IMG/VR virus record: IMGVR_UViG_3300026484_000007
Coordinates: 186,001 to 250,000 of that record
DNA length: 64,000 nt
Reading direction: 5' to 3' (one strand)
This document shows positions 3,108 through 45,140 of the stretch, piece by piece (the first letter of the stretch is position 1; every line of letters starts with the position of its first letter). Below the pieces are notes generated by a model. That model had not been told where the DNA came from and made no database searches. It saw only the letters and a list, made by a program, of their open reading frames with translations. The position numbers were made by a program, and so were the translations under genes.

Positions 3108-3119
3108 AAAGGAGTTCTA

Positions 3120-9152: not shown

Positions 9153-9154
9153 TT

Positions 9155-9757: not shown

Positions 9758-9791
9758 AAATAAATAAAAATAAATAAAAAAAGGATAAACA

Positions 9792-10553: not shown

Positions 10554-10583
10554 ATAAAAATAAAAAAAATTAAAGGATAATCT

Positions 10584-11147: not shown

Positions 11148-11212
11148 ACGAAGAAGTAAAATAAAAAAATAAAAAAAATAAAAATATATTTTATATATAA
11201 TAGGAGTTAAAT

Positions 11213-12169: not shown

Positions 12170-12205
12170 TCCTCTTTGGATCACTTTTTTTGTCGTTAGA
12201 AAAAA
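12165..12205 (+). terminator. intrinsic terminator with conserved tail
   Basis: GTGATCC-TCTTT-GGATCAC + TTTTTTTGTCGTTAGAAAAAA. Confidence 0.85.
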
Positions 12206-12224
12206 TCCATAGAAAAACTTTTGA

Positions 12225-12351
12225 AAAACTTTGATTTCTACGTAGCATCTTTTTTCGATACAAGCGATATAAAAGCAGTTCTAAAATTTTTAGAACTGCT
12301 ATATATCTTTGTGTATCTATCGTTGATCAACGTTCTGGAAACACAGTTTTT
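12225..12351. repeat. ~130-bp intergenic repeat
   Basis: same orientation and near-identical to 2234-2361. Confidence 0.9.
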
Positions 12352-12424
12352 CAAAAGTTTTTTGCGTCCAGTTTTCTCCATCGTATCTCCTTAAACAATT
12401 TAAAAAATAAATTAAGGAGATCTA

Positions 12425-16964: not shown

Positions 16965-18308
16965 ATGGAAAATTTAAAAATTTTAAGTGTATCAAATTTA
17001 GATTCGACTCAAGATGTTCTTTCACAATCAACGATTGACGTAGTAAAACATTCTCCAAAAAAATGCTATAGAATTTTAAGTAAAAATGATTTTGGTAAAA
17101 AAAGAAGAATCAATATTGGATTCTTTAATAAGAAGACGAATTTTATAGTAAGCAATGAAAACTCTTTAATGACGTTAAAATTAGATAATAATGAATTAAA
17201 AGTTCAAGCAACAACAATCGATTCAATTGAAAAAAATGAATTCCTAATCTATTATATTCCTATTTTAGAATTAAAAAGATTAAATAAAATTAATGAGCAT
17301 ATTTTGATTACTACGCATGATGAAGATGATCCTGAAAAGATCATTAAAACAGAAGTTCCTTTAACTTTCGATTTAGGTAGAGTAGTAGGTAAAATTTTAA
17401 AATATAGAAATCTTGATGAATACATAAATGAAAATCTTTATAAAGATCCTGAAAAGATCAAAGAGGATGAAGCTTTAGAAATTTTTCTAAAATTAATTAT
17501 TGAGAATAATTCGGCGGGAGCAGTATCGCTTCATAAAAAATTAATTTTAAGTAGTAATGAAGAATTTTTATTTGGAATAATTTTTGAATTCTTCGAAAAA
17601 CCAAAAACTTCAGAAGAGAAAAATAAAATATATATAAATGATATTAACGTGTATAGTTTAACTATGATATTAAATCTTTTAGGTGCGAGTTATTCAATTA
17701 GAAAAACTCCAGAAAGAGGTTTTCAATTAAGATTTAAATTACCTATTTATTTTGAATATTTATTAGAAAAATTATACGATTCTAATAAAGAATCTTTTAA
17801 AGATCTTTCTAAAGAAGAATTTTTATATAAATTAAAAATGTTTAGACAATATAGATTCTACGTGCTTAAAAATGAAAACTCTAATGAAAACTCTATCGAA
17901 ATCAAAGAACTTAGTGGATATAGTACTTATAAAAAAGTCGTAGAAGATTTCAAAAAATTAGACAATCAAGATGAAACTTTAATTAATTTAATTAATATTG
18001 GAGCGATTGAATTAATACCAGTTTATGATCTAGTATTTGAAAAAGTGGAATGTCCAGTAATGTTTGATTTTGTGACAGAAGGTAGAGAAAAAGGAACTAA
18101 CTATATCATTCCTGGATTACCATTATTAAAAAATAGTGATGGAGATATACTTGGTGTTATGGCAGTATGGACAAAAGATGCTGCGCAAGAAGCTGATAAA
18201 AAATTTGGAATTAAAACTAAATCTAATTTAGTAAGTCCATTGACTGGTGGTGTTTATCAATGGATAGGAATCGATGGAATTCTTGGATTATATAATTTTA
18301 CAAAATAG
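16965..18308 (+). CDS. split-intein C-fragment (390 aa, degenerate LAGLIDADG region) fused to 57-aa RNA polymerase beta' segment starting SDGD
   Basis: block F VMFDFVTE...NY, block G LLKN|S at 18134/18135; extein SDGDILGV...NLVSPLTG...DGILGLYNFT aligns to RpoC DGDQMAV...NILSPANG...DVVLGLYYMT. Confidence 0.88.
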   Translation: MENLKILSVSNLDSTQDVLSQSTIDVVKHSPKKCYRILSKNDFGKKRRINIGFFNKKTNFIVSNENSLMTLKLDNNELKVQATTIDSIEKNEFLIYYIPILELKRLNKINEHILITTHDEDDPEKIIKTEVPLTFDLGRVVGKILKYRNLDEYINENLYKDPEKIKEDEALEIFLKLIIENNSAGAVSLHKKLILSSNEEFLFGIIFEFFEKPKTSEEKNKIYINDINVYSLTMILNLLGASYSIRKTPERGFQLRFKLPIYFEYLLEKLYDSNKESFKDLSKEEFLYKLKMFRQYRFYVLKNENSNENSIEIKELSGYSTYKKVVEDFKKLDNQDETLINLINIGAIELIPVYDLVFEKVECPVMFDFVTEGREKGTNYIIPGLPLLKNSDGDILGVMAVWTKDAAQEADKKFGIKTKSNLVSPLTGGVYQWIGIDGILGLYNFTK

Positions 18309-21400: not shown

Positions 21401-21590
21401 AAATCCAGAAGTCAAAAAAGCGGAAAATGAAATAAATAAAATTTTTGATAAAGTGACCGATGAAGTGACCAATGAAGTATCTGAAGCATCTGATGAAAAT
21501 TCTGAAATTAATTTAGCGGTCGGCGTTAAACCAACGATCCCAGGCGCTCCAGTTCCTCCTCCACCAACACCTCCAAAAGGATCTTTTTAA
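18417..21590 (+). CDS. primase-helicase (AEP/PrimPol-like primase, Zn-finger, SF3-like helicase)
   Basis: VVDIDFH, TGSGLQ, QRVLGSIN; CPFHED; GVPGVGKN, VVLDE, MFSN. Confidence 0.85.
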   Translation: MENTGFKIIENHNFDEIKRYWLDLYGAEELASDETIRVVPQIKFDNGEQKVFTINNQINSLSGFLDFIKNMDNQYGIGKVGYSISSAIFHYDPENKDDKGQVVKPNAGTFKRIKNVVVDIDFHMAKSKDRFVLGFLENTYIDFAILNIFLSISEKLQEAGIDVVKPKIAGMTGSGLQIVFEMDRELYKDDALVFLTYLKKILGGLTKDLALKDQFGNIVSATAEVDTTFADLVHVQRVLGSINQKYFTLSKYSNVFEFNSKEEYFKNIDRIKNEYLSFINEAQFPITTKEKYNKYITHIIERIKTITANESVNQFFVDKYLQLAKMEQYAGKTAIRPSEMKNIELDLIYKLKEEGIKTIDLIRDLVKIDHESSRFIALKCPFHEDTKYSFAIYINDGIDVLYDFHDGKSYNLVSFWEKIYNVNKTTAISQISQKAGIKLGKGERKDFQQLEIEEIVDHLLDKIDLDKFIYYRLANKNRVCIVRHKDTGEAFVFDGPKMIASHVLQNQLKVEDADKKLQEVFYNRFQERILIDAFEEFHPGKPTVFQREFIKFVNLWVPSKNYLNAHERAKELKEELQIDKKIPLEDSIQILKEKTPWTFKYIQQLTQKGNLLWFINWLANGAKYQVMPTIPVIFGVPGVGKNLFVTTILEWYHNNEYTKVMTSDRLMSNFNSILENASMVVLDEGDVSNSKEFDFLKFLSGNKNLMIEKKGQDVKISEKFFNIIMFSNGDIPVRHSFDDRRIQYFKTEQTLLQSCKQWGITIDDFIENVEKELEDFWGILLNISLDKKWSISNEKDKLYIIQILKQHSFGELILKLLEGQWRDIALQLNENISDPALMKANLELLKEIKEHFENESKLSLTLINRYLNALNFKYKTSIQRFIQRNSLQDIGIDIEVTLEDVLIKIDKEKLQNLINVPNVLTIKEYKSIDRFIRILKKAIDSIIDTKSKFIEDEKIIESQEIKVETDMEASNKKELESIGIYDKDSPEIDPDGLFKNPEVKKAENEINKIFDKVTDEVTNEVSEASDENSEINLAVGVKPTIPGAPVPPPPTPPKGSF

Positions 21591-24529: not shown

Positions 24530-25177
24530 ATGAAAAAAATTACATTAACTGAAGCATTATCTGAATTAAAATTATACGATAAAAAAATTACTAAAGAAAT
24601 ATCAGAATTAAGTAGATCTAAAAGCACAGTCGATTATGTTATAGGTAAAAATAAATTAACTGAAATCAATAAAATGACTGAAGAAGAGTTAAAAGAATAT
24701 GCTCAAAGCGCTGTAGATAAATTATTAAATTTAATTAAAAACAGAGGTATTCTTAAAGCAGCAATTGCTAAAGCAAACGCAATTACAACATTAAACGTTA
24801 ATGGAAAAGAATATACTATCGTAGAAGCTATTGAAAGAAAAAATAATATTTATAAAGAAAAAGAAATTTTAAATATTCTTGCAGAAAATTATAACAATGT
24901 TGCTTATAAAGTTTCAAGAATCAATGAAAATGCGAGAGATGAAGTAAATAGATTATTAGAAGCTAAATTATCTAGCGATAGTAAAAATCAATCGTCAGAT
25001 GAAATTGAAAAACTATCTCAAGTTCTTTTAGAAGCTAAAGAAGCTAAAATTCTCGATCCATATAAAATCGGAGATTTAATAGTAAAAATGCAAGAAGAAA
25101 TTGAAGAGTTCGAAACTAACATCGACGTAGCATTATCAATCGTAAATGCTAAAACAGAAATCGAAGTAGATCTTTAA
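24530..25177 (+). CDS. conserved coiled-coil protein (DIP1984/DUF6847-like)
   Basis: TLTEALSELK, IAKANAIT, TIVEAIERK, LDP, IDVALSIVNAKTEIEV. Confidence 0.6.
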   Translation: MKKITLTEALSELKLYDKKITKEISELSRSKSTVDYVIGKNKLTEINKMTEEELKEYAQSAVDKLLNLIKNRGILKAAIAKANAITTLNVNGKEYTIVEAIERKNNIYKEKEILNILAENYNNVAYKVSRINENARDEVNRLLEAKLSSDSKNQSSDEIEKLSQVLLEAKEAKILDPYKIGDLIVKMQEEIEEFETNIDVALSIVNAKTEIEVDL

Positions 25178-31426: not shown

Positions 31427-32875
31427 ATGGGTTTTGATTTACTCGATATAAATAAATTTATTAAAGAAAAGGATGCTAAAGAAGTAACATCCGAAAAAAC
31501 ATTTTTATTTACAAAAGGCGATTTTATTCCAGATCCAAATGGTTTATATAGTCCACAGATCTTCGAAGGAACTGGTATTAAAGGACAACGGGATAAATAC
31601 GGATACATATCTTTAAAAAATACAATTATGCATCCATTAATTTATAAGAATCTAAAAAAGATTGCTACAATTTTTTATTATGTAGCAACTTCTGAAAAAC
31701 ACGTTGAAATTATTGATGGTGAACTTATAGAAACACCACCAGAAAACGGTGGTAAAACTGGATTAGACTTTCTAATAAATAATTGGAAAAAAATTAATTT
31801 AGATAAATACAAGAAAGAAACGAATGAATTCTTTATTGAGTTTCTAAAGAAAGTTCAAGAAAAATTAATTTTTATTAATAAACTTCCAGTTATTCCAGTA
31901 CTTTATCGACCTTATACTTTTGAACACGGACGAGTAATTGAAGATGAAATTACTGAAAAGTATAAAAAAATTTTATTAGAATACAAAAAAACTATGGGAG
32001 GTCTTTCCGGTCAGCCTTTGAATTCGTTGAATTCTAAAAATTTAACTGCGTCTGAAGATGCAGTTAGTTTAACTGGAAGAAGATCTACTATATCTAACAT
32101 TGATAACCCATTAGGTATTTCTGATGATAATGGATTAGAATTATTAAATTCATTTATTCAGAATAATGTAAATTCTTCAGAAAAAGTTCAAAAATACGTT
32201 CAGGATCTATATGATTATTTTATTTCTAAATTAGAGAAAAAAGAAGGTTTCTTTAGAAGTAATTTAGTAGGTAAAAGATTAGATAATGTATCAAGATTAG
32301 TTGCTAATGCTCGTCCAGATATACCAGTAGATTGCGTAGGTATTCCTTGGCATGTATTAATTAATATTTTTGATTATTACGTATTAGCTGAGTTAGAGCA
32401 TAATAAAGATGTCGCTGAAAAACTTGGTCTTGCTGACATTAGTACAGTAGACTTTGGAAAACACATCTATTATATCTATAAAAACTGTGATATTTATTGC
32501 AAGTCGTTTCCTGAAAGACAACAGATATGGATAGAATTACTTACAGAAATCTTTGATAAACATGATTATCTTAGAGTAGTATTTAAACGGGATCCAGGTT
32601 GGTCAGCGAATTCATTCTGGTCAGTAAAACCATTAATCTTAAAAGGATGTTCGTATTACATTGTTGTAAATTCATTTTATTACAAACCACTTGGTGGAGA
32701 TAGTTTTAATACTAATATTCTAATTAAAGAATCTACTCAAAAATCTATTACTAAAGATTTAATTTTATCAAAGGATCCAAAAAAGATCCAAAAAAGATAT
32801 ACGTTAGAATTTCCAGTAGCTAATGAAGCAAAAACATTAAAAAATTATTACGAAAAAAATAAAAAGGAGAAATAA
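31427..32875 (+). CDS. RNA polymerase beta' N-terminal fragment ending in GGD, fused to 57-aa split-intein N-fragment
   Basis: GLYSPQIF, LPVIPVLYRP, KEGFFRSNLVGKRLD, KRDP; KPLGGD|SFNTNILI at 32701/32702. Confidence 0.9.
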   Translation: MGFDLLDINKFIKEKDAKEVTSEKTFLFTKGDFIPDPNGLYSPQIFEGTGIKGQRDKYGYISLKNTIMHPLIYKNLKKIATIFYYVATSEKHVEIIDGELIETPPENGGKTGLDFLINNWKKINLDKYKKETNEFFIEFLKKVQEKLIFINKLPVIPVLYRPYTFEHGRVIEDEITEKYKKILLEYKKTMGGLSGQPLNSLNSKNLTASEDAVSLTGRRSTISNIDNPLGISDDNGLELLNSFIQNNVNSSEKVQKYVQDLYDYFISKLEKKEGFFRSNLVGKRLDNVSRLVANARPDIPVDCVGIPWHVLINIFDYYVLAELEHNKDVAEKLGLADISTVDFGKHIYYIYKNCDIYCKSFPERQQIWIELLTEIFDKHDYLRVVFKRDPGWSANSFWSVKPLILKGCSYYIVVNSFYYKPLGGDSFNTNILIKESTQKSITKDLILSKDPKKIQKRYTLEFPVANEAKTLKNYYEKNKKEK

Positions 32876-33576
32876 TGGCTAGAGCACCTAAAACAACAAG
32901 ACGAAAAAGAAAAAATCAAGAAGAATTACAAACAGCACAAAATACTCAAGATGTACAAACAACGTTAAACGAAGAAGGATCTTTAAAAGATCCAAACAAG
33001 TTAACTGATTTAACGGAACCGACAGATTTAAAAGATCAATCTAATTTAACTGATTTAACTGAGCCAACAGTTGAAATCGATAATGAATCTAAAAATGAAT
33101 CTTTAAAAGATCTAACTGAGCCTACTATATCTACTGGCGAAACAACTGAGCCAACAGTTGAAAATGTATCTCAAGAAGATCCAACTGCAGAAGAGCTTAA
33201 AGAAACTTCAGAAAAAGAAATTTTAGAAGAAGCTAAAGAAGAAGCTAAAGAAGATACCAAATCTGCAAAAAAACGTAATACTAAAAAGCGATCTAAAAAA
33301 GATTCTGAGGTTGAAGTCGCTCAATCCAATCAATCTAATCAGATCAATCAAGAATCTAAAAAAGATCGAAAAAAGATCTCTTTTTTAGATAAAGTAAAAA
33401 TGGCTGCAAGAAATGAATTATCGGAAACCGAAAAATTAAAACAAGAATTAATTAAAAAATCAGTTTCTGATGTTTTAACTCAAGAATATCAAAATACCGT
33501 TTATGTATCTAAAGCAGATCAAAATAAAATAAAAGATAAACATGTTACTTATAATATGTCAGATCTTGGATTTTAA
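32875..33576 (+). CDS. low-complexity acidic/basic hypothetical protein
   Basis: DLTEPT repeats; AAGGAG RBS. Confidence 0.75.
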   Translation: MARAPKTTRRKRKNQEELQTAQNTQDVQTTLNEEGSLKDPNKLTDLTEPTDLKDQSNLTDLTEPTVEIDNESKNESLKDLTEPTISTGETTEPTVENVSQEDPTAEELKETSEKEILEEAKEEAKEDTKSAKKRNTKKRSKKDSEVEVAQSNQSNQINQESKKDRKKISFLDKVKMAARNELSETEKLKQELIKKSVSDVLTQEYQNTVYVSKADQNKIKDKHVTYNMSDLGF

Positions 33577-33594
33577 TATTAAAAAGGAGAATGT

Positions 33595-34326
33595 ATGTAT
33601 TTAGCGTTAATGATCGAAGAATCATTTAATGAATTTCTTCAAAAAAATAATCTTCCTCAAACTACTTTAGAAGAAACCCACTATTTAAAAACCGGAAAAA
33701 ATCCTGGTTCTTTTAATTTAATTGAAGAAGGAGCTTTAGCTCGAGGAGCTGGGCTTGGGGCTCTTGTAGGTACTGCTGCGGTAGGAACTGCTCTTGGTAT
33801 GGATCATAGTCACATGCATGACATGCGCGACGCTTACGATTTCGCTCATAATGATGAAACTGGATTAGAAAATTCAAAAATAAATCAAGGGATTAAAGAT
33901 GCTTTAAAATCAGATAATGAAACTGAATTTAAAGACAATAATGGAGAAGCTCCAAAAGATAAACCAGATTTAATTGATTCTGCGGAAGAAAGAAAGAAAA
34001 TCGATGAATTCGTGAAAAACTGGAATGCGGAACATAAAGACCATCCATTGTCGACTAACGACATTATTAGTAAATACAATATGACTCAAAATAAAGAATT
34101 TACTCAACTTCAAAGCAGAATCGATAATGCAGATTTAAATAAATCTAAAGCATTCCAATCTAATTGGGATAGTCTAAAACAAGGCGTTGGTAATCTTTGG
34201 AGTGGTTCTAAAGAAGGGCTTAACGATAAAGCGCTTGGAGCATTAAAAGTTGGTGGAGCAGCAATTGGTGGTGGAGCAGCAATTGGTGCAACATTAGGTG
34301 GAATTCTTGGAAATAATAGAAGATAA
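33595..34326 (+). CDS. glycine-zipper protein (N- and C-terminal zippers)
   Basis: MIEE|S, LIEE|G then GAGLGALVG; GGAAIGGGAAIGATLGG. Confidence 0.8.
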   Translation: MYLALMIEESFNEFLQKNNLPQTTLEETHYLKTGKNPGSFNLIEEGALARGAGLGALVGTAAVGTALGMDHSHMHDMRDAYDFAHNDETGLENSKINQGIKDALKSDNETEFKDNNGEAPKDKPDLIDSAEERKKIDEFVKNWNAEHKDHPLSTNDIISKYNMTQNKEFTQLQSRIDNADLNKSKAFQSNWDSLKQGVGNLWSGSKEGLNDKALGALKVGGAAIGGGAAIGATLGGILGNNRR

Positions 34327-34375
34327 TAGAAGATAATATAAAATAAAAATAAAAATTTTATAAAAGGAAGCGAAT

Positions 34376-35728
34376 ATGGCTTATGTTTTTAAAAAAGACA
34401 AAAACGGTAAATTAAAATTGATTAAACCATCAACCTCGGCTACCTCAACGACCGACAAAAGTGATCTTTTAAAGATCACTAATTCTCATAATTCTCATAC
34501 TTCACTCAAAAGAACAATTGAGGAAAATTCATCTGCTATTTTAGAAGTTCCTATAGAAAAAGAAACCGAAAAATTTATCGAGACTCGAGACTGGGTAATT
34601 CCAAAAAAATTCATGATGCCAGATTGGGTAGAAAAAAATTTAAAAGACTTTAAAGATCAAGCAAGAGAAATTATCTCAAACGCAGACGAATCTTCTATAG
34701 ATTCAATTAATCCTAAAATTAAAAAATTAATTGAAGAATTAATTCTTGATAATAAAGTTAAACCTAAGTATCCTTTAAATAAAAAGACTCTTGGAAAATT
34801 ATCGAATGAAATGTGGAAAGTCTTCGGTGAAGATGAATTCATGTATCGATATTGGATACTACAAGAAGCTGGATTTTTTCTAAGTACTTTTAAACCATCT
34901 GGATTTGAACCTGAGGCTCTACAATTACCTGAAAAATTCGTTAAAAGAAAAGACGCATTATTAAAAGAATTTGAAAAACGAGTTAAAGAACACGGTAAAG
35001 ATAAAGCGGTAGCTTGGATTGATAAAGAATTTAATAATTTAACCAACGAGGTAATCGATTACTGGGAAGAAAAAGGTATTAACGTTGTAGATATGATTAG
35101 ATCAGGAGCAAGAGGTGGTCCAGCGGATATTAGAAAAATGCTTGTTGCTGTTGGGTTAAGTATTGATAGTTCAGGAAAACCAAACGACGTTATTATGACG
35201 TCACAAATCGAAGGTTTATCTCAAACTCAATTCTTTCATTATTCTTCACAAGCAATTATGGCATTATATGCAAAATCTTCAGAAACTGCTGTTCCAGGTT
35301 ATCTTGCAAGAAAATTAAGTACAGTTGCGGACGCGGTAAATCTTTCAGAAGTTGAAGATTGTAAAACGAAGAGATTTTTGGAAGTAACAGTTCTTGATTC
35401 AGATGTTCTTAATGCGTTAGATGGTAGAGTATTGCATACAGGTAAAGTTATTGATTCTGAAAAAGATACTAATTTAATTGGTAAAAAAATTAAAATTAGA
35501 TCGCCTTTATATTGTAAGGCAACTGATGGTATATGCGCTACATGTTATAATAAAAAAATTATTCAGAAAATGAATTGGCAGCCTGGAGAAAAAATTGGGT
35601 TGCATGCAGCTACAACTCTTGGAGATCAAGCATTAGTAAACTTAACACTTAAAAAATCTCATGTTGGTCTTTCATTAAATATGGAAACCGTAGATTTAGA
35701 AAAAGATATTTTTCAATTCGCAGAGTGA
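34376..35728 (+). CDS. RNA polymerase beta' middle fragment (funnel, bridge helix, trigger loop)
   Basis: MIRSGARG, TAVPGYLARKL, RSPLYC...GICATCY, GEKIGLHAATTLG...LTLKKSHVG. Confidence 0.92.
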   Translation: MAYVFKKDKNGKLKLIKPSTSATSTTDKSDLLKITNSHNSHTSLKRTIEENSSAILEVPIEKETEKFIETRDWVIPKKFMMPDWVEKNLKDFKDQAREIISNADESSIDSINPKIKKLIEELILDNKVKPKYPLNKKTLGKLSNEMWKVFGEDEFMYRYWILQEAGFFLSTFKPSGFEPEALQLPEKFVKRKDALLKEFEKRVKEHGKDKAVAWIDKEFNNLTNEVIDYWEEKGINVVDMIRSGARGGPADIRKMLVAVGLSIDSSGKPNDVIMTSQIEGLSQTQFFHYSSQAIMALYAKSSETAVPGYLARKLSTVADAVNLSEVEDCKTKRFLEVTVLDSDVLNALDGRVLHTGKVIDSEKDTNLIGKKIKIRSPLYCKATDGICATCYNKKIIQKMNWQPGEKIGLHAATTLGDQALVNLTLKKSHVGLSLNMETVDLEKDIFQFAE

Positions 35729-35779
35729 TCTTTTTTAGATCACTCTCTAGCTTTTTTTGTCATTAGATAATTTTTCCTG

Positions 35780-35918
35780 AAAACTCGTGATCTTAAAACG
35801 TTGAGCTTCATTAGATATCTAAAGATATATACGAGTTCTAAAATTTATAAAACCGTTTTAGAACTCGTATATATCCTTAGCATCGAAAAAAGATGCTACT
35901 TGAAAAATCAAAGTTTTT
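35780..35918. repeat. ~130-bp intergenic repeat, reverse orientation
   Basis: GTTCTAAAA...TTTTAGAAC core; follows terminator 35722-35770. Confidence 0.9.
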
Positions 35919-35974
35919 CTTTTTCATTTTTTAAAAAATTGAATTTTTTAAACGAAGCCAAAAAAGGATTTTTT

Positions 35975-37066
35975 ATGAGCGCGGCAAGCACAACGAGAGT
36001 GATAAATTTAAACAGATCAATCTTTTATCTTAATCAATCTTGTGTAAAAGAAATTCATGAATCTTCAATGTTAATTGAAGAAATTTCAAGTAAAGAAATA
36101 ATTTCAAAAATAAGATCATTTATGCCTAATTTAGATAATAAAATTGCTAAGCAATTTAATAATATATATAGAATTTTATCTAATGCGTTAGCATCTAAAA
36201 AAGATCTTGAAAGAATAAAAAAGATCAATGATGAGCAAATGAAAGCCATCGAAAAATATTTAAAAAAGAATGGTATAAATACTAAAAAATTAAAAGATAG
36301 ACTTAAAGAGAAAAAACAATTAACTCCAACCGATTTAGATTTAATCATCGAGATGGGATTAATTGAATTAAAACACACAACTGCGAAAGATTTTATTGAA
36401 GTCGTAGCTTTCGTTTTAGTAGCTTTTATTTTAAATACTTTTATTATTTATTCTATACTTGATCTTATATTTTTCATCAATCCATTGGCTAATTATAGTC
36501 AAGCTATGATGGTAGCTGTTTCAATTGGAGCAGTACTTTCAGCACCATTCGTTGAAGAAGCTGGTAAACGAGTAAGTATTGAAAGAAAAAAAGGTTTACT
36601 GTATATTATAGGTTTTAATATTGCTGAATATACTTCTTATGTTTCTGCAGCTGCAGGAGCAGGTCTTGGATACATGATAATTATGATGATTGTTCGATTG
36701 TTACCGGTTGCAATGCATTTCTCAAATTATAGTATTCATCAAAAAGGTGATATTGATCAAAAAATAGCAGATAAGTATAAAATTTCTACTGAAAGAGATT
36801 TCAGACAAGACGCTCAACGAATAGCAATGACAATACATAGATTTTGGAATATTGGATTAATATTTTTAGCTCCACTTGCAGGTTGGGCAAATTCTTATTT
36901 TAGCAATAAATTTCCTGTGAAAAAAATTGAAGAAAAAATTGAACCAAGATCATATTTAAACGAAATTCAAAAATTCTTTAAAGAAAAATCTAAAACTTTA
37001 AAATACATTAATGCTAAAAAAGTAATCGAAAAAAATATCAAAAAAAATATCAAAAAGGATAAATAA
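35975..37066 (+). CDS. PrsW-like intramembrane glutamic/metallo-protease
   Basis: APFVEEAGK, GFNIAE, AMH, IHRFWN in TM helices; RBS supports ATG 35975; IHE|S and LIEE candidate leader sites. Confidence 0.7.
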   Translation: MSAASTTRVINLNRSIFYLNQSCVKEIHESSMLIEEISSKEIISKIRSFMPNLDNKIAKQFNNIYRILSNALASKKDLERIKKINDEQMKAIEKYLKKNGINTKKLKDRLKEKKQLTPTDLDLIIEMGLIELKHTTAKDFIEVVAFVLVAFILNTFIIYSILDLIFFINPLANYSQAMMVAVSIGAVLSAPFVEEAGKRVSIERKKGLLYIIGFNIAEYTSYVSAAAGAGLGYMIIMMIVRLLPVAMHFSNYSIHQKGDIDQKIADKYKISTERDFRQDAQRIAMTIHRFWNIGLIFLAPLAGWANSYFSNKFPVKKIEEKIEPRSYLNEIQKFFKEKSKTLKYINAKKVIEKNIKKNIKKDK

Positions 37067-37338
37067 TGGCTTTAAAAACTTCATATATTGAATTAAATAA
37101 AGATTATCAAATAATTTTAGATAACTCTGGGCAAAATTCCTCAGCAGATAATTTTATTCAAGTTAATCATGGAACAGCAGAATTGTTCTTTGATACCGAT
37201 ACTCCAAGTTCATCTTCGATTGGATTAAGATGGTCCGCTGGAGCTCGAATTTTATTCGTGCCTCAAGGATCAAAATTATATGGAAGACTTTGGAAAAATT
37301 CCGATAGCTGTAGCGTAATCGTGAACAAAGACTCTTAA
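37066..37338 (+). CDS. hypothetical protein
   Basis: 90 aa, AAGGA RBS. Confidence 0.7.
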   Translation: MALKTSYIELNKDYQIILDNSGQNSSADNFIQVNHGTAELFFDTDTPSSSSIGLRWSAGARILFVPQGSKLYGRLWKNSDSCSVIVNKDS

Positions 37339-37348
37339 AGGATAAAAT

Positions 37349-37756
37349 ATGGCTAATAAAAATTATACAGTTGGCCTTGATAAAAAATATTTAGATCTAG
37401 TTGACGCAGATCTAACTCCAGAAAATCAAAGATTTTTAAATGATTACGTTGCTAAAAAATTAAGAATGATAGATAACACTATCATCGCAAATCATCTTAA
37501 AAAAATGGATCAAGAAGCTTCTCATTATAAAAATCTTGATAACTTTGAAAAACAAGAGATAATTAATTCCGAAAGATGGAAAAATCCATTGATCGGTGCA
37601 ACTATTGGAGGAGCTCTTGGTTTTGGACTTACTGATGTAATCAGTGGAAATCCTACGACCGATGGAATATTTGGCGCTCTTGGGTTAGGAGTTGGAGCTT
37701 ATCAAGGTAAGAAATATACTGATTTTAAATTAAAAAGGCAAGGATTGATAAAATGA
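37349..37756 (+). CDS. glycine-zipper protein
   Basis: GATIGGALGFG and GIFGALGLGVG. Confidence 0.75.
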   Translation: MANKNYTVGLDKKYLDLVDADLTPENQRFLNDYVAKKLRMIDNTIIANHLKKMDQEASHYKNLDNFEKQEIINSERWKNPLIGATIGGALGFGLTDVISGNPTTDGIFGALGLGVGAYQGKKYTDFKLKRQGLIK

Positions 37757-38496
37757 AACGAAGAAATTATTTTAATTATTTAAAAGGATCTGCAAAAGAT
37801 CTTTTAGAAGAAAATGATCGTTATCGAGCGTTCTATCCCACTTCCACTGCCGCTGCCGCTCCACAAAGATCAATTTGGTCGGATATGAAAAACGGCGCAA
37901 AAAATCTTGGGAATAGCATAGTAAATTCTGCTAGTAAATTTGGATCTAAAATAACTAATGACCCAAAAATTGCTGCAGCTACAGGAGCAGCGATAGGTGG
38001 AGCTCTTCATCTTTACGATGTTCATGATGCAAAATCTGATTTATCTGATCTTATGGGCAAAAATTTTGATGCAGAAAAAATTAATAAAGATACATTCAAT
38101 AGCAATTATGAGCAATACAAAGATCTTTATAATAAAGAAGGTATTAATAAATTTGATGCGAATAACGATGGATACTTAGATAAAAACGAACTTCATAAAC
38201 TTTATAATACATATAAAAATGATACAAGTTGGTTCCCGTGGTGGAATGATGCAGATGATAAAATCAGTGCGGCTAAAGAATATTATGATTATATTCAAAA
38301 AACTCCAGCAATGGATTTTAATAAAGATGGAATTGTAGATTCTAATGACACTAAAGCAATGAAAGATGTTGATCGTGTCGTTAATAGTAGTTTACCTGCG
38401 AACTTAATGGGTGGTGCTGCAATTGGAGGAGCTCTTGGATATGGAACTAATAAACTTAATTCAAAACTTAATTCAAAATTTGGAGGACATTCATGA
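37753..38496 (+). CDS. glycine-zipper protein with EF-hand loops
   Basis: LLEE|N; GAAIGGA; DANNDGYLDKNE, DFNKDGIVDSND; GGAAIGGALGYG. Confidence 0.8.
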   Translation: MKRRNYFNYLKGSAKDLLEENDRYRAFYPTSTAAAAPQRSIWSDMKNGAKNLGNSIVNSASKFGSKITNDPKIAAATGAAIGGALHLYDVHDAKSDLSDLMGKNFDAEKINKDTFNSNYEQYKDLYNKEGINKFDANNDGYLDKNELHKLYNTYKNDTSWFPWWNDADDKISAAKEYYDYIQKTPAMDFNKDGIVDSNDTKAMKDVDRVVNSSLPANLMGGAAIGGALGYGTNKLNSKLNSKFGGHS

Positions 38497-39260
38497 AAAA
38501 TATAAAAAAGACAAGAACGCTTAATTATTTAAATGAGGCATCTAATAGAGATCTTTCAATTGCTTTAACTGGATTAGGTTTTGGAATTGGTGGAGCCGCT
38601 CTTGGCGACTCAATATATGATGCTCACTTAGATCATTATAATTCCGAATTCCAAAAACAATTTTCCGATATTAATGCCACCAAAGATCAATTATTGAATG
38701 AAAAATTTGGTGATCCTGAAAATAATAAAGAAGCTCTTCAATCATATCAAGATCAATACAATAAAATAAAATTTGCTGATTTTAATAAAGATGGTTTCGT
38801 TGATGAACGAGAATACAACAAAGCACTTGAAAATTATAAAAATTATATTAACAGCGGAGGTAATAATCCATTCTCTGATAATTATAAAAATTTAGATTAT
38901 AAACCAGATACAGTAAAACAATTAAATACTTATAAAAATTTATTACATGATAAAGATTTTGTATCTAAATTCGATGTAAATCAAGATGGAACATTTAACG
39001 CAAGAGAATTACAGTTATTGAAAAAACTTCCAGAGTATCAAGACAGAATGAATTCTTTTGAATATCAACCATATTTATATGGAACTGCTGGAGCAATAGC
39101 GGGAATGAAATTAATGGATGCTGCGACTAGAGGCGAAAGTTCTGATAAAGATCGAATAAATTTTCCAAGTAATAGATTTGCTCCGTTTGGTGCTCCAAAA
39201 AGACCAAACGAATCTCAAGAAATCGTAGATAAAGTTCCACTACCACCGATAGTAAAATAA
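38493..39260 (+). CDS. glycine-zipper protein with EF-hand loops
   Basis: YLNE|A; GLGFGIGGAALG; DFNKDGFVDERE, DVNQDGTFNARE; GTAGAIAG. Confidence 0.8.
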   Translation: MKNIKKTRTLNYLNEASNRDLSIALTGLGFGIGGAALGDSIYDAHLDHYNSEFQKQFSDINATKDQLLNEKFGDPENNKEALQSYQDQYNKIKFADFNKDGFVDEREYNKALENYKNYINSGGNNPFSDNYKNLDYKPDTVKQLNTYKNLLHDKDFVSKFDVNQDGTFNARELQLLKKLPEYQDRMNSFEYQPYLYGTAGAIAGMKLMDAATRGESSDKDRINFPSNRFAPFGAPKRPNESQEIVDKVPLPPIVK

Positions 39261-39294
39261 AAAATTATATAAAATTTAAATCAAAGGAAAATCG

Positions 39295-40047
39295 ATGTTA
39301 TCGAAAGACAAATTTAATAAATATTTAAAAATTGAAAATAATACTGTAATTGCAAAAGCACCTATCCGAATCGATCTTGATCTTTCAGAATACAAAAATA
39401 TATCGGAAGAATTTGATACGGATAATGATTCTGGAATTGCAGAGACTGCTAATGGAGTTTATGAGATTCCAGGATTTTTTACTTTAGAAATTCTTGATAA
39501 TGATAAGAATATCGTTGATAGTATTCAATTCTTTTTCCCATACAACGTATACTTATTAGGATCAAATAATTCTGAAATTAGTAGTACAAGATTTTTAATG
39601 GAATACGAAGAAGGGGATTCAATATTCTTCGCGAAATTTAAAAAACAAGAAACTGATATTAGAATTCTTGACAAATTATTTGAAAACGGGATAAAATATC
39701 TTAGTACAAGAATGGATTTCTTAATTTATAATATTTGGAAACAAGTTGAACCAACGATTAACGTTCCTTGGCATCACTTTGAAGTAATTGTTTCTCAATT
39801 GTATGGTAAAAGAGTTGAAGGAGGACATTACGTTCCTTTACGATTAACTAACGAAGAGTATTCTAAAAAATATGCTTTAAATACTAAACAAGCAGCGCAC
39901 TATTTTGGAGAATCAAGTGGATTCTTATATGGATATAGTAATGATGCGTTATTGACTAGTGTTTCTAAAGATAAAACAGTTCCGAAAAAATATAGACCAG
40001 ATTATTATATGGAAAAATTAATTGCCGGAGAAGTTAATGAAGTTTAA
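39295..40047 (+). CDS. RNA polymerase beta' C-terminal fragment
   Basis: INVPWHHFEVIVSQL resembles RpoC INDKHIEVIVRQM; C-terminal EKLIAGE resembles ENVIVG. Confidence 0.7.
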   Translation: MLSKDKFNKYLKIENNTVIAKAPIRIDLDLSEYKNISEEFDTDNDSGIAETANGVYEIPGFFTLEILDNDKNIVDSIQFFFPYNVYLLGSNNSEISSTRFLMEYEEGDSIFFAKFKKQETDIRILDKLFENGIKYLSTRMDFLIYNIWKQVEPTINVPWHHFEVIVSQLYGKRVEGGHYVPLRLTNEEYSKKYALNTKQAAHYFGESSGFLYGYSNDALLTSVSKDKTVPKKYRPDYYMEKLIAGEVNEV

Positions 40048-40152
40048 AAACTTATAAAGTTTAAAAGTGATCTAAAAAAGATCACTTTTAATTTTTTTTG
40101 TCTTTAGCAAAATTTTAGCGAAGTTCTATCGAAGTCAATAAAAAAACTTTTG

Positions 40153-40281
40153 AAAACTTGAGTTTCCAGAACGTTGAGCTTCTATAGATATCTAAAGATA
40201 TATAGCAGTTCTAAAAATTTTAGAACTGCTTTTATATCGCTTGTATCTAAAAAAGATGCTACGTGGAAAATCAAAGTTTTT
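40153..40281. repeat. ~130-bp intergenic repeat, reverse orientation
   Basis: near reverse complement of 2234-2361; follows terminator 40061-40112. Confidence 0.9.
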
Positions 40282-40343
40282 CAAGTTTTAAATTTAAAAA
40301 AATACAAAGAAAGAAAAAGAAAGAAAATTAAAAGGATAGTTAA

Positions 40344-41999
40344 ATGAAATTAGATCAATTATTAATGAAACAAAAAACATCTTTGAAAGACTCAGCATTT
40401 CCAGCTTTATTCGCTGGCGACGAAATTACTATAAGTTATTTACCTGAGATCGGAGCATCCGGAATAAATTTTATTAATAAATTAAGAAAGAAAAATATTT
40501 TCAATGAAGTTCTTATTTATCCATATTATACCCTTGGAGCGAAAAAAATTATTTCTAAAGATTACATTGCAGATTTTAAAAAATTAAATCCAAATATAAA
40601 GACTGTTTATAAATTTAAAACTTTCATGAAAAACAGAGCAAACGTGATCGATCTAACTCCACTGATGGATCTTTTTTCGATCCTAATCAATCAGCAGCCA
40701 AAATTTAAAGTTTTAAATGAAACGATTGATGCTATAAATAATTATTTTACTGAGAATGTATCTTCCCAAGATCCTACTGGAGAAAAACATTTTATTTTCG
40801 TGGATTGTAATTCTAAAAGCAATTTTAATTTCTTAGATTCTATTTATAGATTATTTAGAAAAAAAGCTTTCAAACTCAATCATGATCTTTTAAAGATCAA
40901 AGGTTTATTTGTAATAGCTTTAAACGAATCTGAAGAATTTGATATTTATCCATTAATCCATAAAAAAGAAAAACATTTAATCTTTCGACCTGATATTTAT
41001 AGATTAATCAAAAAAGATCTTACTGGGATCGAAGAAGAAGAAATAAACGAATTCGTTGATTCATATGAAAAAATCAATGAAGCTAGAAATAATATTTTAA
41101 ACATTACTGATAAACTTTTAAATAAAATTGGGAAAGGATCTGCAAAAGATTCGAAAGAGACTGCAGACTTTCTAAATCAATTAGGAAATGCTAAAGAAAG
41201 ATTTGAAAACTACATCGATTTAATTTATCAAGAATTATCAAGTAATGATATTCCTGGAAATGATTATATAGAAAAACTTCATCGTTTATTTCCGAAAGAC
41301 ACGACGGATCCAAAAAAGATCCAAAAGATTGAAAAATTAATTTCTTACATAGATGATCTTAATAAGATCTATAATGGATCAATTAAAATAAAAAAAGATT
41401 TAATTAATAAATCTGCTGATATTTATTATGATCCAATGGAGATCGTTAAGTTAGATGAAATTTCTGTTTATAATAAGCAGAAAACAGAATTCGATGAAGT
41501 GCTAGATAAATCAATGTTTGATTTAATTAAAAGTATTGAGCGAGATAAAGATGCAGGAATTGAAGTTCTTGATATTAAAGTAGAAGTTCAAGACACTAAT
41601 AAAAGTAGATTTAAAAAATACAAAGTTAAATTAAAGAATACTAAGTTCGGTAAAAAAACTCCATACGAAATAGAATTTCTTACTCCGTATCCTATCAAAG
41701 GAAAATATTTAAAAATAGGTGGAGTAAGATACATAATGTTAAATCAATTTATGGCTAAACCTATTTTAAAAATTAAGCCTAACATTGTAAGATTATATAC
41801 TCACTTCAGTACTTTCTCAGTAACTTTAAAAACTCATAAATATAATAATACTCAAGATTTCCACGAGATCTTAATGAAAGTTACTTCTAGTATAAAAGGA
41901 TCTAAAATAGATTACGTCGAATCTACTAACAATGATCCGCGCGAAAAATATAAATTTTATATCGATAGAACTTTTATAGATAAAACTATAGAATTATAA
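40344..41999 (+). CDS. RNA polymerase beta N-terminal fragment with long N-terminal extension
   Basis: PYPIKGKYLKIGGVRYIMLNQF resembles RpoB [22 protein letters not shown]. Confidence 0.65.
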   Translation: MKLDQLLMKQKTSLKDSAFPALFAGDEITISYLPEIGASGINFINKLRKKNIFNEVLIYPYYTLGAKKIISKDYIADFKKLNPNIKTVYKFKTFMKNRANVIDLTPLMDLFSILINQQPKFKVLNETIDAINNYFTENVSSQDPTGEKHFIFVDCNSKSNFNFLDSIYRLFRKKAFKLNHDLLKIKGLFVIALNESEEFDIYPLIHKKEKHLIFRPDIYRLIKKDLTGIEEEEINEFVDSYEKINEARNNILNITDKLLNKIGKGSAKDSKETADFLNQLGNAKERFENYIDLIYQELSSNDIPGNDYIEKLHRLFPKDTTDPKKIQKIEKLISYIDDLNKIYNGSIKIKKDLINKSADIYYDPMEIVKLDEISVYNKQKTEFDEVLDKSMFDLIKSIERDKDAGIEVLDIKVEVQDTNKSRFKKYKVKLKNTKFGKKTPYEIEFLTPYPIKGKYLKIGGVRYIMLNQFMAKPILKIKPNIVRLYTHFSTFSVTLKTHKYNNTQDFHEILMKVTSSIKGSKIDYVESTNNDPREKYKFYIDRTFIDKTIEL

Positions 42000-42020
42000 A
42001 TTAATCATAAAGGACAAAAT

Positions 42021-45000
42021 ATGATCAAAAAAGATACGTCTGATGCTACATTAAAATTAAAATCTGCAAAATTTTATATAGATTTTCATAATGAAAAAAA
42101 TAATAAATTATTTTTTTATGAAGTTTATTCTAAGAAAAAAGGAACTGCTGGAGCAGAGCGTCTCGAATACGCTTATATGACTCCAGACGACGAAGTGATC
42201 TTTTACAAACCCATCGATGATATCGAAGAGCATGAAATACCAAAGAAAGATCTTCGAGAGTTTCTTCTTGGTAGAATTAATAGCATAGCGATGTTAAAAT
42301 TAGGAGCTAGAGTTGATATTAAATCAAAATCTTCTAAACCTACTTTTAAAATTAAAGCGTTGAGCAATGAACCCGAAGTAATTCTTTTTGCTAGTATTAT
42401 TTTAGGATTAAGACCTGCGCTAGATTTCATGGGAATAAAGTATAGTTTTAATAAGACTAAAGAAGGTTATAAATCTATAAAACTATCCACTCAAGATGGT
42501 AAAACTAAATATTTTAATATTTATGCTAACTCTTTATACGATGAATACGTTTTAAATGGAATGTCTTCTTTTATTAAGAAAATTGAATTCACTGAAGAAA
42601 ATTTATCTTCTAAAGATGTATTCATAACTTATTTCGATAATCGTTTTGGTAAAGGTTTATTTAATTCTTATAATCAAAAGTTAGTATCTTTTATAGATAC
42701 AACGACTGAGCAAATTTTAAGATCGTATGGTTATAGTACGGATCCATTAAAATTATTATGTATAACTATGCCTAAGAAAATACTAAACGAAGCAGTCGAT
42801 GATATCGATAATCTTGAAAATAAAAGAATTAGAATGGCTGAAAGTATTGCTCACTCAGCTTATAATGCAGTTTCGCAAGCTCTTGTAAAATTCAAGAAAG
42901 AATCTAAATTAGATAACGTTAAATTACATATTCAAAAAGATTATATTATTAATAATCTTATTAACACTGGTATGGTTCAATGGAGTAATCCAGTTAACCC
43001 ATTAGAAGAATTAACTACTTCTGCAAAAATTACTAAAACTGGGGTTGGGAATCCATTAAAAGAACAGATCACTATAGACAAAAGGGATCTTAATGAAAGT
43101 TATTTTGGAGTTGTATCTGCGACACATACTAATGAGTACGGTGGAATAGGTTTAAACCAAACTCTCGTAAATAAAATGATGATCAAAGATAGATTCGGAA
43201 GTATTTTAATTAAAAAATTCCAAGATACTAATCCTTTTGAAATACTAAGTCCAATTGAAAGTATTGCTCCATTTATGGATACAGATGATACTACTAGAAA
43301 AGTTATGGGGAATCAGCAAACCTCACAATTCATTCAAGTTAAAAATCCAGATGTTCCTCTTGTTCAAACTGGTTTTGAAGCTTATATACCTTATATAGTA
43401 TCTGATAGATTTGCAATGAAAGCTAAAAAACCTGGAACTGTTAAATTAGAAAAAGACTATATTATAATGAAATACAATGATGGTTCTGAAGAAATCTTTA
43501 GTACTAAACCCACTAAAGCGAGAACTAAAAGAGGTCTTTATATTCCAATTGAATATAACGTTCTTGTAAAAGATGGTCAAAAAGTAAAAGAAGGAGAAAT
43601 CCTTGCAGCAACTAATTCTTTAAAACACGGAAAATTAGGTATAGGAAAAAATTTAGTAGTCGCAGAAATGTCTTATCGAGGTATGAATTACGAAGATGGT
43701 TGGGTAATATGCGAAGACCTTAAAGAAAAATATCAAAGTTCTTTATATGAAAAAATTACTATAATTATTCCAGAAGGTGCTAAGATTCAAGATTTTAATA
43801 TTGAATTAAATAAAAACACTAAACCTGGAGAAAAATTAATTTCGTATGTTACAAACGCAACTGAGTCTTTAGAATTCGATGAAGAAAATAGTATTACTGA
43901 TGAAAATACTGATGATTTAAGTACAGGTAAAGAGATTAGAGGTAATACAGTAACTTACTATAGTATCGGTGGACAAATTGCAGATTTTGTAATAAAATTA
44001 AATTCTACTAAAATTGATAAAAAAATTATAGAAAAATTTAAATTTCAAAATTCAGAAATTGAAAAAAAATTAAAGATTTGCGAAAAACTCAAAAATGAAA
44101 TTAATAAATTAGATTGTAGAGATAACATTGAACATCTTGAAGCTCTTGAAGTTGGTGGACATAAAGCAAATAAAATGGAGCCAGAAGGAGCGATTATTGA
44201 AGTCTATATCGAAACAGAAAATCCAATCAGAAACGGATCAAAATTTACTTTAGCGAGTACTGGTGGTAAAGGTACTGTACAATACATTATTGATAAAGAT
44301 AAAAAACCTTATACAAAAGAAACTGGATTAGAAATTGATTTTATTGCGACTCCGTTGTCAATCATTTCAAGAAAAAACCCAAGTATTATTTTACAATTGT
44401 ATCTTGGAAAAGTAATTTATTTTCTAAATAAAAAAGTTGAAGAATTAGCTAAAGAAAATAAAATTTCTTCGGTTAGAACTTTAATTACTAAAGTATTTGA
44501 AAGAATTGATAAATCAGATGATAAAGTTTATCTAAATCAATTAAAAGGATTCTTAAAAAATAAAGATGATTTTCTTAAAAAATATATTTTAAAACATGAT
44601 CCTTTAAATAACCCAGCTTTCCCAGCAATTATGCCTCCATTCGGAAGTAAATTAAGTACGAAAGATATCGAAGATGCTGCAGATATTCTTGGAATTCCTT
44701 TACAAGAACATGTAATAATTCCAGAAGAAGATAATAAAGAGACTAAATATAAAGTTACTGTTGGAATTATGCCAGTATTTTATTTAGAACATTTTCCAAA
44801 AGCTATGTCAGGGGTAAGAGGAAGTATTAATGTTAAAAATCAATTAACGACTGGACAAGGTCGTGCCGGAACTAAAGAAGGAAACGGAGCAATTAAACTT
44901 GGTTTATATGATATGTTTTCCGTTACATCAAGACGAGCAAATAAGTTCATTAAAGAAATGTGGGCAGTAAAATCAGATGATTACGAAGCGAAAAAAGAAC

Positions 45001-45140
45001 TTCGAAAGAAAATCATTAAATCAGCCGAAACTGGCGAAGAAATAAATGTTTCTGATATTGAAGTAAAACCAGAAGATATTACTACCAAAAAATTGATTGA
45101 AGCATATTTTTATGGAGCATGTTTGCAGCCACGTTTCTAA
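42021..45140 (+). CDS. RNA polymerase beta main fragment
   Basis: HTNEYGGIGL, DDTTRKVMGNQQTSQ, GMNYEDG, GSKF...GGKGTV, SRKN, LEH, KSDD. Confidence 0.95.
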   Translation: MIKKDTSDATLKLKSAKFYIDFHNEKNNKLFFYEVYSKKKGTAGAERLEYAYMTPDDEVIFYKPIDDIEEHEIPKKDLREFLLGRINSIAMLKLGARVDIKSKSSKPTFKIKALSNEPEVILFASIILGLRPALDFMGIKYSFNKTKEGYKSIKLSTQDGKTKYFNIYANSLYDEYVLNGMSSFIKKIEFTEENLSSKDVFITYFDNRFGKGLFNSYNQKLVSFIDTTTEQILRSYGYSTDPLKLLCITMPKKILNEAVDDIDNLENKRIRMAESIAHSAYNAVSQALVKFKKESKLDNVKLHIQKDYIINNLINTGMVQWSNPVNPLEELTTSAKITKTGVGNPLKEQITIDKRDLNESYFGVVSATHTNEYGGIGLNQTLVNKMMIKDRFGSILIKKFQDTNPFEILSPIESIAPFMDTDDTTRKVMGNQQTSQFIQVKNPDVPLVQTGFEAYIPYIVSDRFAMKAKKPGTVKLEKDYIIMKYNDGSEEIFSTKPTKARTKRGLYIPIEYNVLVKDGQKVKEGEILAATNSLKHGKLGIGKNLVVAEMSYRGMNYEDGWVICEDLKEKYQSSLYEKITIIIPEGAKIQDFNIELNKNTKPGEKLISYVTNATESLEFDEENSITDENTDDLSTGKEIRGNTVTYYSIGGQIADFVIKLNSTKIDKKIIEKFKFQNSEIEKKLKICEKLKNEINKLDCRDNIEHLEALEVGGHKANKMEPEGAIIEVYIETENPIRNGSKFTLASTGGKGTVQYIIDKDKKPYTKETGLEIDFIATPLSIISRKNPSIILQLYLGKVIYFLNKKVEELAKENKISSVRTLITKVFERIDKSDDKVYLNQLKGFLKNKDDFLKKYILKHDPLNNPAFPAIMPPFGSKLSTKDIEDAADILGIPLQEHVIIPEEDNKETKYKVTVGIMPVFYLEHFPKAMSGVRGSINVKNQLTTGQGRAGTKEGNGAIKLGLYDMFSVTSRRANKFIKEMWAVKSDDYEAKKELRKKIIKSAETGEEINVSDIEVKPEDITTKKLIEAYFYGACLQPRF

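Follow-up and report, generated by a model that had tools for sequence, protein, structure and literature searches.

The virion RNA polymerases (RNAPs) of phages of the phiKZ, PBS1-AR9 and phiR1-37-like kinds are assembled from bacterial-type beta and beta' subunits that are encoded by several split genes, with a second, non-virion set encoded alongside. The same layout is found in a jumbo phage represented by the 64,000-nucleotide stretch analyzed here (positions 186,001 to 250,000 of IMG/VR record IMGVR_UViG_3300026484_000007; hereafter, the window), which possesses two multi-subunit RNAPs, the set encoded in the window being the virion-type member. The window enzyme differs from the described ones in that its beta' is split into more parts, one of the cuts falling in the trigger loop, and in that the phage is known from metagenome contigs alone, such that packaging of the enzyme is predicted. 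A second cut lies in the catalytic Asp loop of beta', between the products of two distant genes starting at window positions 31427 and 16965, and the arrangement at this cut is very likely intein-derived and split. In phage phiR1-37 and the Staphylococcus phage Machias the same loop is interrupted by intron- or homing endonuclease gene (HEG)-type insertions, whereas the interruption in the window appears to lie at the protein level, in the form of a split intein.

Among described elements, the nearest is the PolB16 OarG intein, a natural intein from a phage-like metagenomic source that is atypically split into 15 and 168 residues, possesses Ser1 and Ser+1, has a non-canonical block B and lacks a catalytic Cys; split inteins devoid of cysteine are described as highly uncommon and are wanted for protein ligation under oxidizing conditions (PMC10189870). 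The element in the window shares with PolB16 OarG the Ser1/Ser+1 pair, a split N-terminal of the usual site and the combination of a short N-fragment with a long C-fragment, though it interrupts an RNAP beta' loop instead of PolB, its family has N-fragments of 45-80 aa instead of 15, its C-fragment of ~390 aa (against 168) retains a LAGLIDADG-fold domain, and its splicing is predicted. Inteins such as PI-SceI, PI-PfuI and TliVMA/PhoVMA, which combine splicing and LAGLIDADG domains with a terminal Asn and a nucleophile, provide the best structural matches to the 16965 product, but the element in the window is divided over two genes with the C-half gene upstream and has lost the endonuclease acids. 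The cyanobacterial DnaE split inteins are cut at the endonuclease insertion site into an N-part of ~100 aa and a C-part of ~35 aa and have no endonuclease domain. As in DnaE, two genes far apart encode an essential polymerase subunit, each with one half of the intein, and trans-splicing would rejoin the subunit, though here the split appears to lie upstream of block B, away from the site of endonuclease insertion, and the C-half retains the endonuclease-fold domain. 'Fractured genes' with free-standing endonuclease genes were reportedly described by Dassa et al. in 2009. A literature search, whose incomplete coverage leaves novelty unproven, returned no description of a split or contiguous intein in a phage RNAP beta' gene.

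The divided catalytic loop of beta'

Past its double-psi barrel, the product of the 31427 gene (P0001) reads ...YYKPLGGD-SFNTN... in place of NADFDGD and continues into a 57-residue tail, and the product of the 16965 gene (P0006) ends with ...LLKN-SDGDILGVMAVW...LGLYNFTK. Cutting after Asp425 of P0001 and before Ser391 of P0006 and joining the flanks gives GGD-SDGD, a full D-x-D-x-D loop in a subunit of 482 residues; the predicted junction peptide of the ligated beta' N subunit is PLGGDSDGDILGVMAVWTK. The Mg-binding Asp triad is present in no single product of the window and is held only by the joined exteins, in which all three Asp are invariant, and the sole canonical NADFDGD of the genome belongs to the second RNAP set. 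With Ser at intein position 1, Asn as the last residue and Ser at +1, the two flanks therefore carry an intein junction pattern, with an intein N-part (IntN) on P0001 and an intein C-part (IntC) on P0006.

A profile search of 1.84 billion representatives recovered 68 members of the P0006 family, nearly all of 380-450 residues. In all 49 full-length representatives, which share pairwise identities of <50%, the residues His29, Asp368, Asn390, Ser391 and Asp392-Gly393-Asp394 show no variation. Each of the nine split N-partner genes, of which eight come from related contigs and the ninth is that of P0001, reads GGD/S[FL]xxN (the slash marking the junction) followed by a tail of 45-80 aa, G423, G424 and D425 of P0001 are invariant in relatives, and a P0006-like gene accompanies the split N-partner wherever the contig is long enough. 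The IntC gene lies upstream of the IntN gene, at a distance of ~13-14 kb here and 4-6 kb in relatives with other genes between, and this C-half-first order occurs on at least five independent contigs. A contig of 1,696 nt from an independent study, spanning 31528-33232, has the junction, tail and stop codon unchanged, and its indels within the 31427 gene are multiples of three. Independent samples also show a 9-nt in-frame insertion polymorphism at 32017, within the P0001 gene; read joints in such samples, whose sides were no longer than 24 letters and AT-rich, were taken as spurious. Two candidates in P0006, Cys34 as an intein nucleophile and 'ITTH' (residues 115-118) as block B, were rejected because they are not conserved.

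An unsplit family member, the 915-residue P0075, possesses a full intein at the same site of beta' in exactly the contiguous architecture of PI-SceI and similar inteins. It reads ...GPLGGD/CVKGNIITY...[GLWLGDGY, GLIDSDAS]...ILQCN/SDGDTVAVF..., with Cys at position 1, and its stored Pfam matches are Rpb1_2 and LAGLIDADG_3. The first 374 residues match P0001 (1e-29), and block F/G together with the C-extein align with the split family in hhalign (probability 98%, E 2e-13), the stretch aligned to block F including Asp368 of P0006. Residues 391-447 of P0006 align with the P0075 C-extein, and only this part of P0006 is beta'. The framework Gly residues of LAGLIDADG are kept in the P0006 family (G138, G142, G204 and G208), while the positions of the acids, 143 and 209, are mostly occupied by Lys and by Tyr/Phe, respectively (Lys and Phe in this phage), leaving P0006 without the catalytic acid at position 8 of each helix; the unsplit P0075 retains the canonical acids. 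As judged from these alignments, the split family has preserved its splicing residues and its endonuclease residues have decayed.

Structural comparisons point to the same class of element. The model of P0006 has a mean pLDDT of 49.9, with values of 60-86 only in residues ~110-340, and its three significant Foldseek matches are endonuclease-bearing inteins (7qss, 1.9e-4; 1dq3, 4.1e-4; 7qst, 4.8e-4), with PI-SceI and free-standing LAGLIDADG enzymes ranking next; in the top matches, whole inteins are aligned with P0006 over ~400-440 columns. VIA gave moderate scores for PI-SceI (Z 7.6, rmsd 3.7, 144 aligned), TliVMA (Z 7.2) and I-DmoI (Z 5.4). The Pfam family Intein_splicing was matched by four of 45 members of the P0006 family (best E 1.6e-5) and was the only family matched by more than one member. 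Complex prediction for P0006 with P0001 residues 395-482 reached an ipSAE of 0.68, against 0.00 for the best control, with a predicted interface at residues 436-467 on the P0001 side; 51 out of 78 solved complexes reach the mark used, as do two out of 108 mismatched pairs, and the runs share at least 4% of contacts at a partner pLDDT of at least 25. Look-alikes in the ESM Atlas gave weak leads only, and tblastn of P0006 against phages returned no match.

The loop is also broken in phiR1-37 and Machias, in both cases at DFDG/D by an intron/HEG-type insertion, and it is continuous once the insertion is removed. In phiR1-37, g178 ends with ...GGDFDGKF and a stop codon, followed by the endonuclease-like open reading frame (ORF) g179 and then by an open frame D-TFRLIGLFSDEANREAERIM...SLYMMTRD, while the annotated exons of Machias join as GADFDG/DMISIRSLWSVEANKEA. 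By its sequence, the phiR1-37 insertion looks like an unannotated intron or HEG, and the annotated g178 is probably truncated. Among 7020 six-frame segments, a profile of the P0006 C-extein ranked the non-self exon frames of phiR1-37 and Machias 1 and 2, with E-values of 0.17 and 0.54 that are not significant alone; both alignments begin at the third Asp, and that of phiR1-37 reaches the subunit end. The phiR1-37 exon did not match P0006 in single-sequence phmmer and is ranked by the family profile alone. The phiR1-37 segments occupy 2501-3919, 4017-4949 and 5321-5479 in locus L037 (AJ972879.2), where the beta' frame after g179, from the third Asp onward, carries no annotation.

Proposed mechanism and competing explanations

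In the proposed mechanism, beta would form from two chains (the 40344 and 42021 products) and beta' from four genes, the beta' middle part (34376) ending after the first trigger helix and the C part (39295) opening with an SI3-like domain inside the trigger loop. IntN and IntC would dock to form a HINT domain, which would then carry out class-1 protein trans-splicing via oxyesters, using Ser1, Ser+1 and cyclization of the terminal Asn. Ligation would yield the 482-residue beta' N subunit with the loop GGDSDGD and free an intein of ~447 residues. Prior to splicing the polymerase would be catalytically incompetent, because the Asp triad forms only when the flanks are joined, and the six genes probably give rise to five polypeptides, because the 31427 and 16965 products would be the halves of one split intein. 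It is probable that the split intein actively trans-splices, and there is good reason to favor the reading as a whole, in which a virion-type RNAP encoded by six genes has its catalytic loop rejoined by split-intein trans-splicing.

Several observations weigh against this reading. The spliced product is a prediction from sequence. P0006 itself matches no Pfam family, and a profile search of the PDB returned no intein; its model has pLDDT <40 in the presumed HINT strands and TM-scores of 0.26-0.30, so the HINT fold itself is putative. In the docking, partner confidence was low and one of three runs scored 0.00. In pairwise comparison, the P0075 intein did not score above shuffles against the P0001 tail or the P0006 N-region (z <=1.6), and the split point can therefore not be fixed by homology. 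The suggestion that His29 of P0006 is the block B His or an NX-like His comes from spacing alone: an IntN of 45-80 residues (57 here) plus 29 places this invariant residue at intein position ~75-86, the usual range of block B. The penultimate intein residue is mostly Lys and not the usual His, the identities of the 39295 and 40344 products rest on indirect evidence, and packaging of the enzyme in virions is predicted from one annotated homolog genome.

Some of these observations would suit an arrangement in which the 31427 and 16965 products are merely kept in contact through their HINT halves, without covalent joining, and the catalytic loop is formed across an uncut junction. The docking result fits such attachment equally well, the exchange of the penultimate His for Lys in most members speaks for it, as does the failure to align a canonical TxxH block B motif in the P0001 tail or the P0006 N-region. 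Yet Ser1, the terminal Asn, Ser+1 and the block F Asp serve splicing and not binding, and they are invariant across 49 diverged clusters and kept while the endonuclease acids decayed. In RNAP structures the Asp loop is buried at the floor of the active-center cleft, where a module of ~450 residues would hardly fit. Non-covalent attachment is thus considered unlikely. A decaying or inactive polymerase, in which the window set is without a catalytic loop and the 16965 gene is the relic of a mobile element, would account for the S/N/N shown by P0001 alone at the positions of the Asp triad and for the decayed endonuclease domain. It is nevertheless the least credible of the explanations, as conservation of both partner families extends across deep divergence, their catalytic and splice residues being invariant, all six RNAP genes are intact in many contigs and the variants from independent samples keep the reading frame.

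In the sequence-only reading of the window, the RNAP simply consisted of six fragments, one of them a small piece of beta' at the C-terminus of the 16965 product, and a T4-type prohead protease would act at (L/I)xE sites. The six genes do encode RNAP parts and a portal of the T4 family is present (Portal_T4, PF07230, 43.6 bits against a cut-off of 22.9, window 62879-63841), though this is all that stood of the proposed T4-like morphogenesis: the gp23 capsid and gp21 protease (PF07068, PF03420) were not found, a weak negative given that the control genomes were silent too. The (L/I)xE sites occur at 1.3-2.0 per 100 aa in the six proteins against 1.72 genome-wide, which is background, and TIEE/N (P0002 residue 47), offered as a processing site in the 34376 product, falls in an N-terminal extension (residues 1 to ~70, 34376-34585) that is lineage-specific, relatives beginning at ~residue 70. 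The plain model also leaves unexplained the 390-residue intein/LAGLIDADG-like part, the Ser-led P0001 tail and the unsplit allele, and it is very improbable. The virion-type assignment of the enzyme drew no support from the proposed sites and is retained by orthology to phiR1-37 g178 and g099, as set out below. The split intein with trans-splicing remains the preferred reading.

Subunits, second polymerase and neighboring genes

The six genes encode parts of one multi-subunit RNAP (Table 1), as originally claimed, with direct support from PHROG and Pfam profiles for three (31427, 34376 and 42021) and convergent indirect evidence for the other three, for which neither a Pfam scan nor PHROG returned a family match (P0006, P0005 and P0004). 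The restriction of beta' to the C-terminus of the 16965 product was likewise borne out, by the P0075 alignment. The absence of an N-terminal Zn finger from beta' N was also confirmed: residues 1-120 of P0001 contain no Cys, and the finger is also missing from phiR1-37 g178 and the Machias beta'. Translation table 11 was used throughout.

Table 1. Positions of the RNAP and intein features (window coordinates unless marked C1)
Feature	Coordinates	Strand	Description
Intein C-part (IntC), P0006 residues 1-390	16965..18134	+	His29, LAGLIDADG-fold domain ~100-340, block F Asp368, terminal Asn390
C-extein, P0006 Ser391-Asp-Gly-Asp + 53 residues + stop	18135..18308	+	end of beta' N subunit, ~E. coli beta' 461-520
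beta' N-extein, P0001 residues 1-425	31427..32701	+	clamp/double-psi barrel part, without Zn finger, ends ...YYKPLGGD (first catalytic Asp)
Intein N-part (IntN), P0001 Ser426-Lys482	32702..32875	+	57 aa + stop codon
beta' middle subunit, P0002	34376..35728	+	funnel, bridge helix, first trigger helix
beta' C-terminal subunit, P0005	39295..40047	+	SI3/SBHM-like 7-114; second trigger helix + C-terminal helices 115-250
beta N-terminal subunit, P0004	40344..41999	+	~380-aa family-specific N-region, then conserved beta block ~384-530
beta C-terminal subunit, P0003	42021..45140	+	fork, catalytic region (Rpb2_6), end of clamp
Second canonical RNAP set (outside window)	C1:117,333-126,715	-	beta'-N, beta'-C, 544-aa ORF, beta-N, beta-C

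Among the directly supported subunits, P0001 (31427-32875) matches phrog_2986 (E 1.6e-33), P0002 matches phrog_2962/3015 (~5e-23) and P0003 matches phrog_3148 (4e-50), bacterial beta (2.3e-31), Rpb2_3 and, above the cut-off, Rpb2_6 (E 4.8e-16, 59 bits). Rpb1_1 and Rpb1_2 match weakly in P0001 and Rpb1_4 and Rpb1_5 in P0002, with the order kept and all under the Pfam cut-offs. Residues 228-433 of P0002 align with E. coli beta' 710-940 (E 4e-12), placing its end just past the first trigger helix, and P0002 is a paralog of the beta'-C of the second set (4e-12). Residues ~185-232 of P0001 form a lineage-specific insertion without a counterpart in relatives, and the 9-nt polymorphism at 32017 falls within it.

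The P0005 family has 71 members, and a model built from 44 of them (pLDDT 76.6) returned beta' chains in nearly all of the top 50 Foldseek rows (best E 2e-3), including the AR9 non-virion beta'-C (7um0_D, probability 0.87; 7s00_F, probability 0.95). VIA likens residues 7-114 to the trigger-loop inserts of beta' (SI3/SBHM; Z 3.0-4.1), and its match for residues 115-250 is the C-end of phiKZ gp74 (7ogp_D, Z 3.5), scores that are individually weak; the modeled layout fits an end of P0002 at the insertion point of the trigger loop. P0004 is accepted as the putative beta N-terminal chain from its sequence relationships. Its beta block carries an invariant ...GxYLKIxGVxYIMxNQ..., and residues 384-530 match Klebsiella jumbo phage genes annotated 'RNA polymerase beta subunit' (2e-3, tblastn) and Staphylococcus phage S6 (3e-4), the latter co-oriented with and directly upstream of the S6 match to P0003. 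P0004 also matches phiR1-37 g099 weakly (427-544), in a position collinear with the strong match between g099 and P0003, and in one relative (L013; IMGVR_UViG_3300026521_000527, 8192-12991) the P0004 and P0003 orthologs are fused in a single ORF of 1599 aa, indicating that the beta split varies within the clade. ESM Atlas look-alikes of P0004 include Rpb2_1/Rpb2_2 clusters, as leads only. A Pfam scan of all 22 members of the P0004 family gave noise only, PDB sequence-profile searches with the P0006, P0005 and P0004 families gave nothing or coiled-coil noise, and hhalign against the paralogs of the second set placed the P0005 family (E 0.042) and the P0004 family (E 0.73) where expected without reaching significance.

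The second set is canonical, with a beta'-N of 414 aa that possesses a Zn finger (CQCG..CEECG), a beta'-C of 670 aa that starts FFNADFDGD, a beta-N of 406 aa and a beta-C of 720 aa. Between beta'-C and beta-N lies a 544-aa ORF (C1:120810-122444) with no family match. The non-virion enzymes of phiKZ and AR9 have a fifth subunit of the promoter-specificity type, and by analogy of position the 544-aa ORF could encode such a subunit. The products of phiR1-37 g178 and g099, both annotated 'phage structural protein', match the window set (g178 to P0001, 1.3e-33; g099 to P0003, 3.3e-29) rather than the second set (g178, 6e-4; g099, no match), and the window set is therefore virion-type by orthology. 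Calling virion and non-virion types by similarity to the solved phiKZ/AR9 non-virion enzymes was rejected as not discriminating.

The claim that the RNAP genes are interleaved with virion-type genes did not hold, as the seven ORFs between them (32875-34326 and 35801-39260) match no virion family. The RNAP genes of close relatives lie almost side by side, and by comparison of gene order the interleaving here is attributed to lineage-specific insertions. The order in L012/L013 is IntC, one ORF, a primase-like gene, beta'-N, beta'-mid, small ORFs, a head-tail-adaptor-like gene, beta-N and beta-C; the extra spacing here consists of inserted ribonucleotide reductase (RNR) and thymidylate kinase genes, a pair of ORFs that separates beta'-N from beta'-mid and another five ahead of 39295. 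The primase-like protein (1057 aa; window 18417-21590, + strand; phrog_1156, 3.4e-10) is conserved in relatives between the IntC gene and beta'-N (E 1e-235 to 1e-267), such that its gene always separates the intein halves. A head-tail adaptor or virion structural protein (5725-6450, + strand; phrog_18911, 1.8e-19; phrog_211 'Ad2', 5.6e-8) has its ortholog within the RNAP cluster of L012/L013 and is 25 kb off here. An adjacent pair of ORFs between the RNAP genes (37753-38496 and 38493-39260, + strand) carries EF-hand/dockerin Ca-binding motifs (EF-hand_5, 4.8e-6; Dockerin_1, 7.5e-7 and above its cut-off) and is absent from the clusters of relatives. The ORF at 24530-25177 (+ strand) matches phrog_1491 'tail fiber protein' over its full length (1.9e-48), a label that may be wrong because the ORF lies amid genes of nucleotide metabolism (thymidylate kinase at 22407, RNR alpha at 25225 and RNR beta at 27815). 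Outside the window, at least four radical-SAM-domain proteins are encoded in a row near the genome end (C1:258149-270000; phrog_1802, phrog_27238 and phrog_21308; E to 1.8e-66). Most of the large late ORFs have no PHROG match.

The IMG/VR record is 272,602 bp long with a CheckV completeness of 97%; the window has a GC content of ~28%, and nearly all of its genes are on the + strand. Hydrothermal-vent metagenomes contain near-identical DNA, as does an independent study from 2025 (73% of sampled words), and no RNA runs holding near-identical DNA of the window were found. A megablast of the region against deposited phages gave no DNA-level match, and the nearest beta genes are those of Staphylococcus S6, Yersinia phiR1-37, Fusobacterium phages and PBS1, at protein identities of 22-27%.

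Significance for jumbo phage polymerases

If the preferred reading is true, the metal-binding loop of a cellular-type RNAP is assembled post-translationally from two genes. The family offers dozens of diverged natural Ser/Ser split-intein pairs with an unusual split position. A more speculative thought, to which little weight is given here, is that the split intein acts as a built-in safety catch for an injected enzyme, tying catalytic competence to late-stage assembly or packaging, and that the family (at least 49 diverged Ser1/Ser+1 pairs) may comprise the first natural split inteins with an endonuclease-fold domain in the C-half and a possible source of orthogonal cysteine-less trans-splicing pairs. 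Together with the insertions in phiR1-37 and Staphylococcus jumbo phages, the split intein would mark the beta' Asp loop as a site where mobile elements of different classes have landed repeatedly, and annotators should expect RNAP 'fragments' that end or start inside it.

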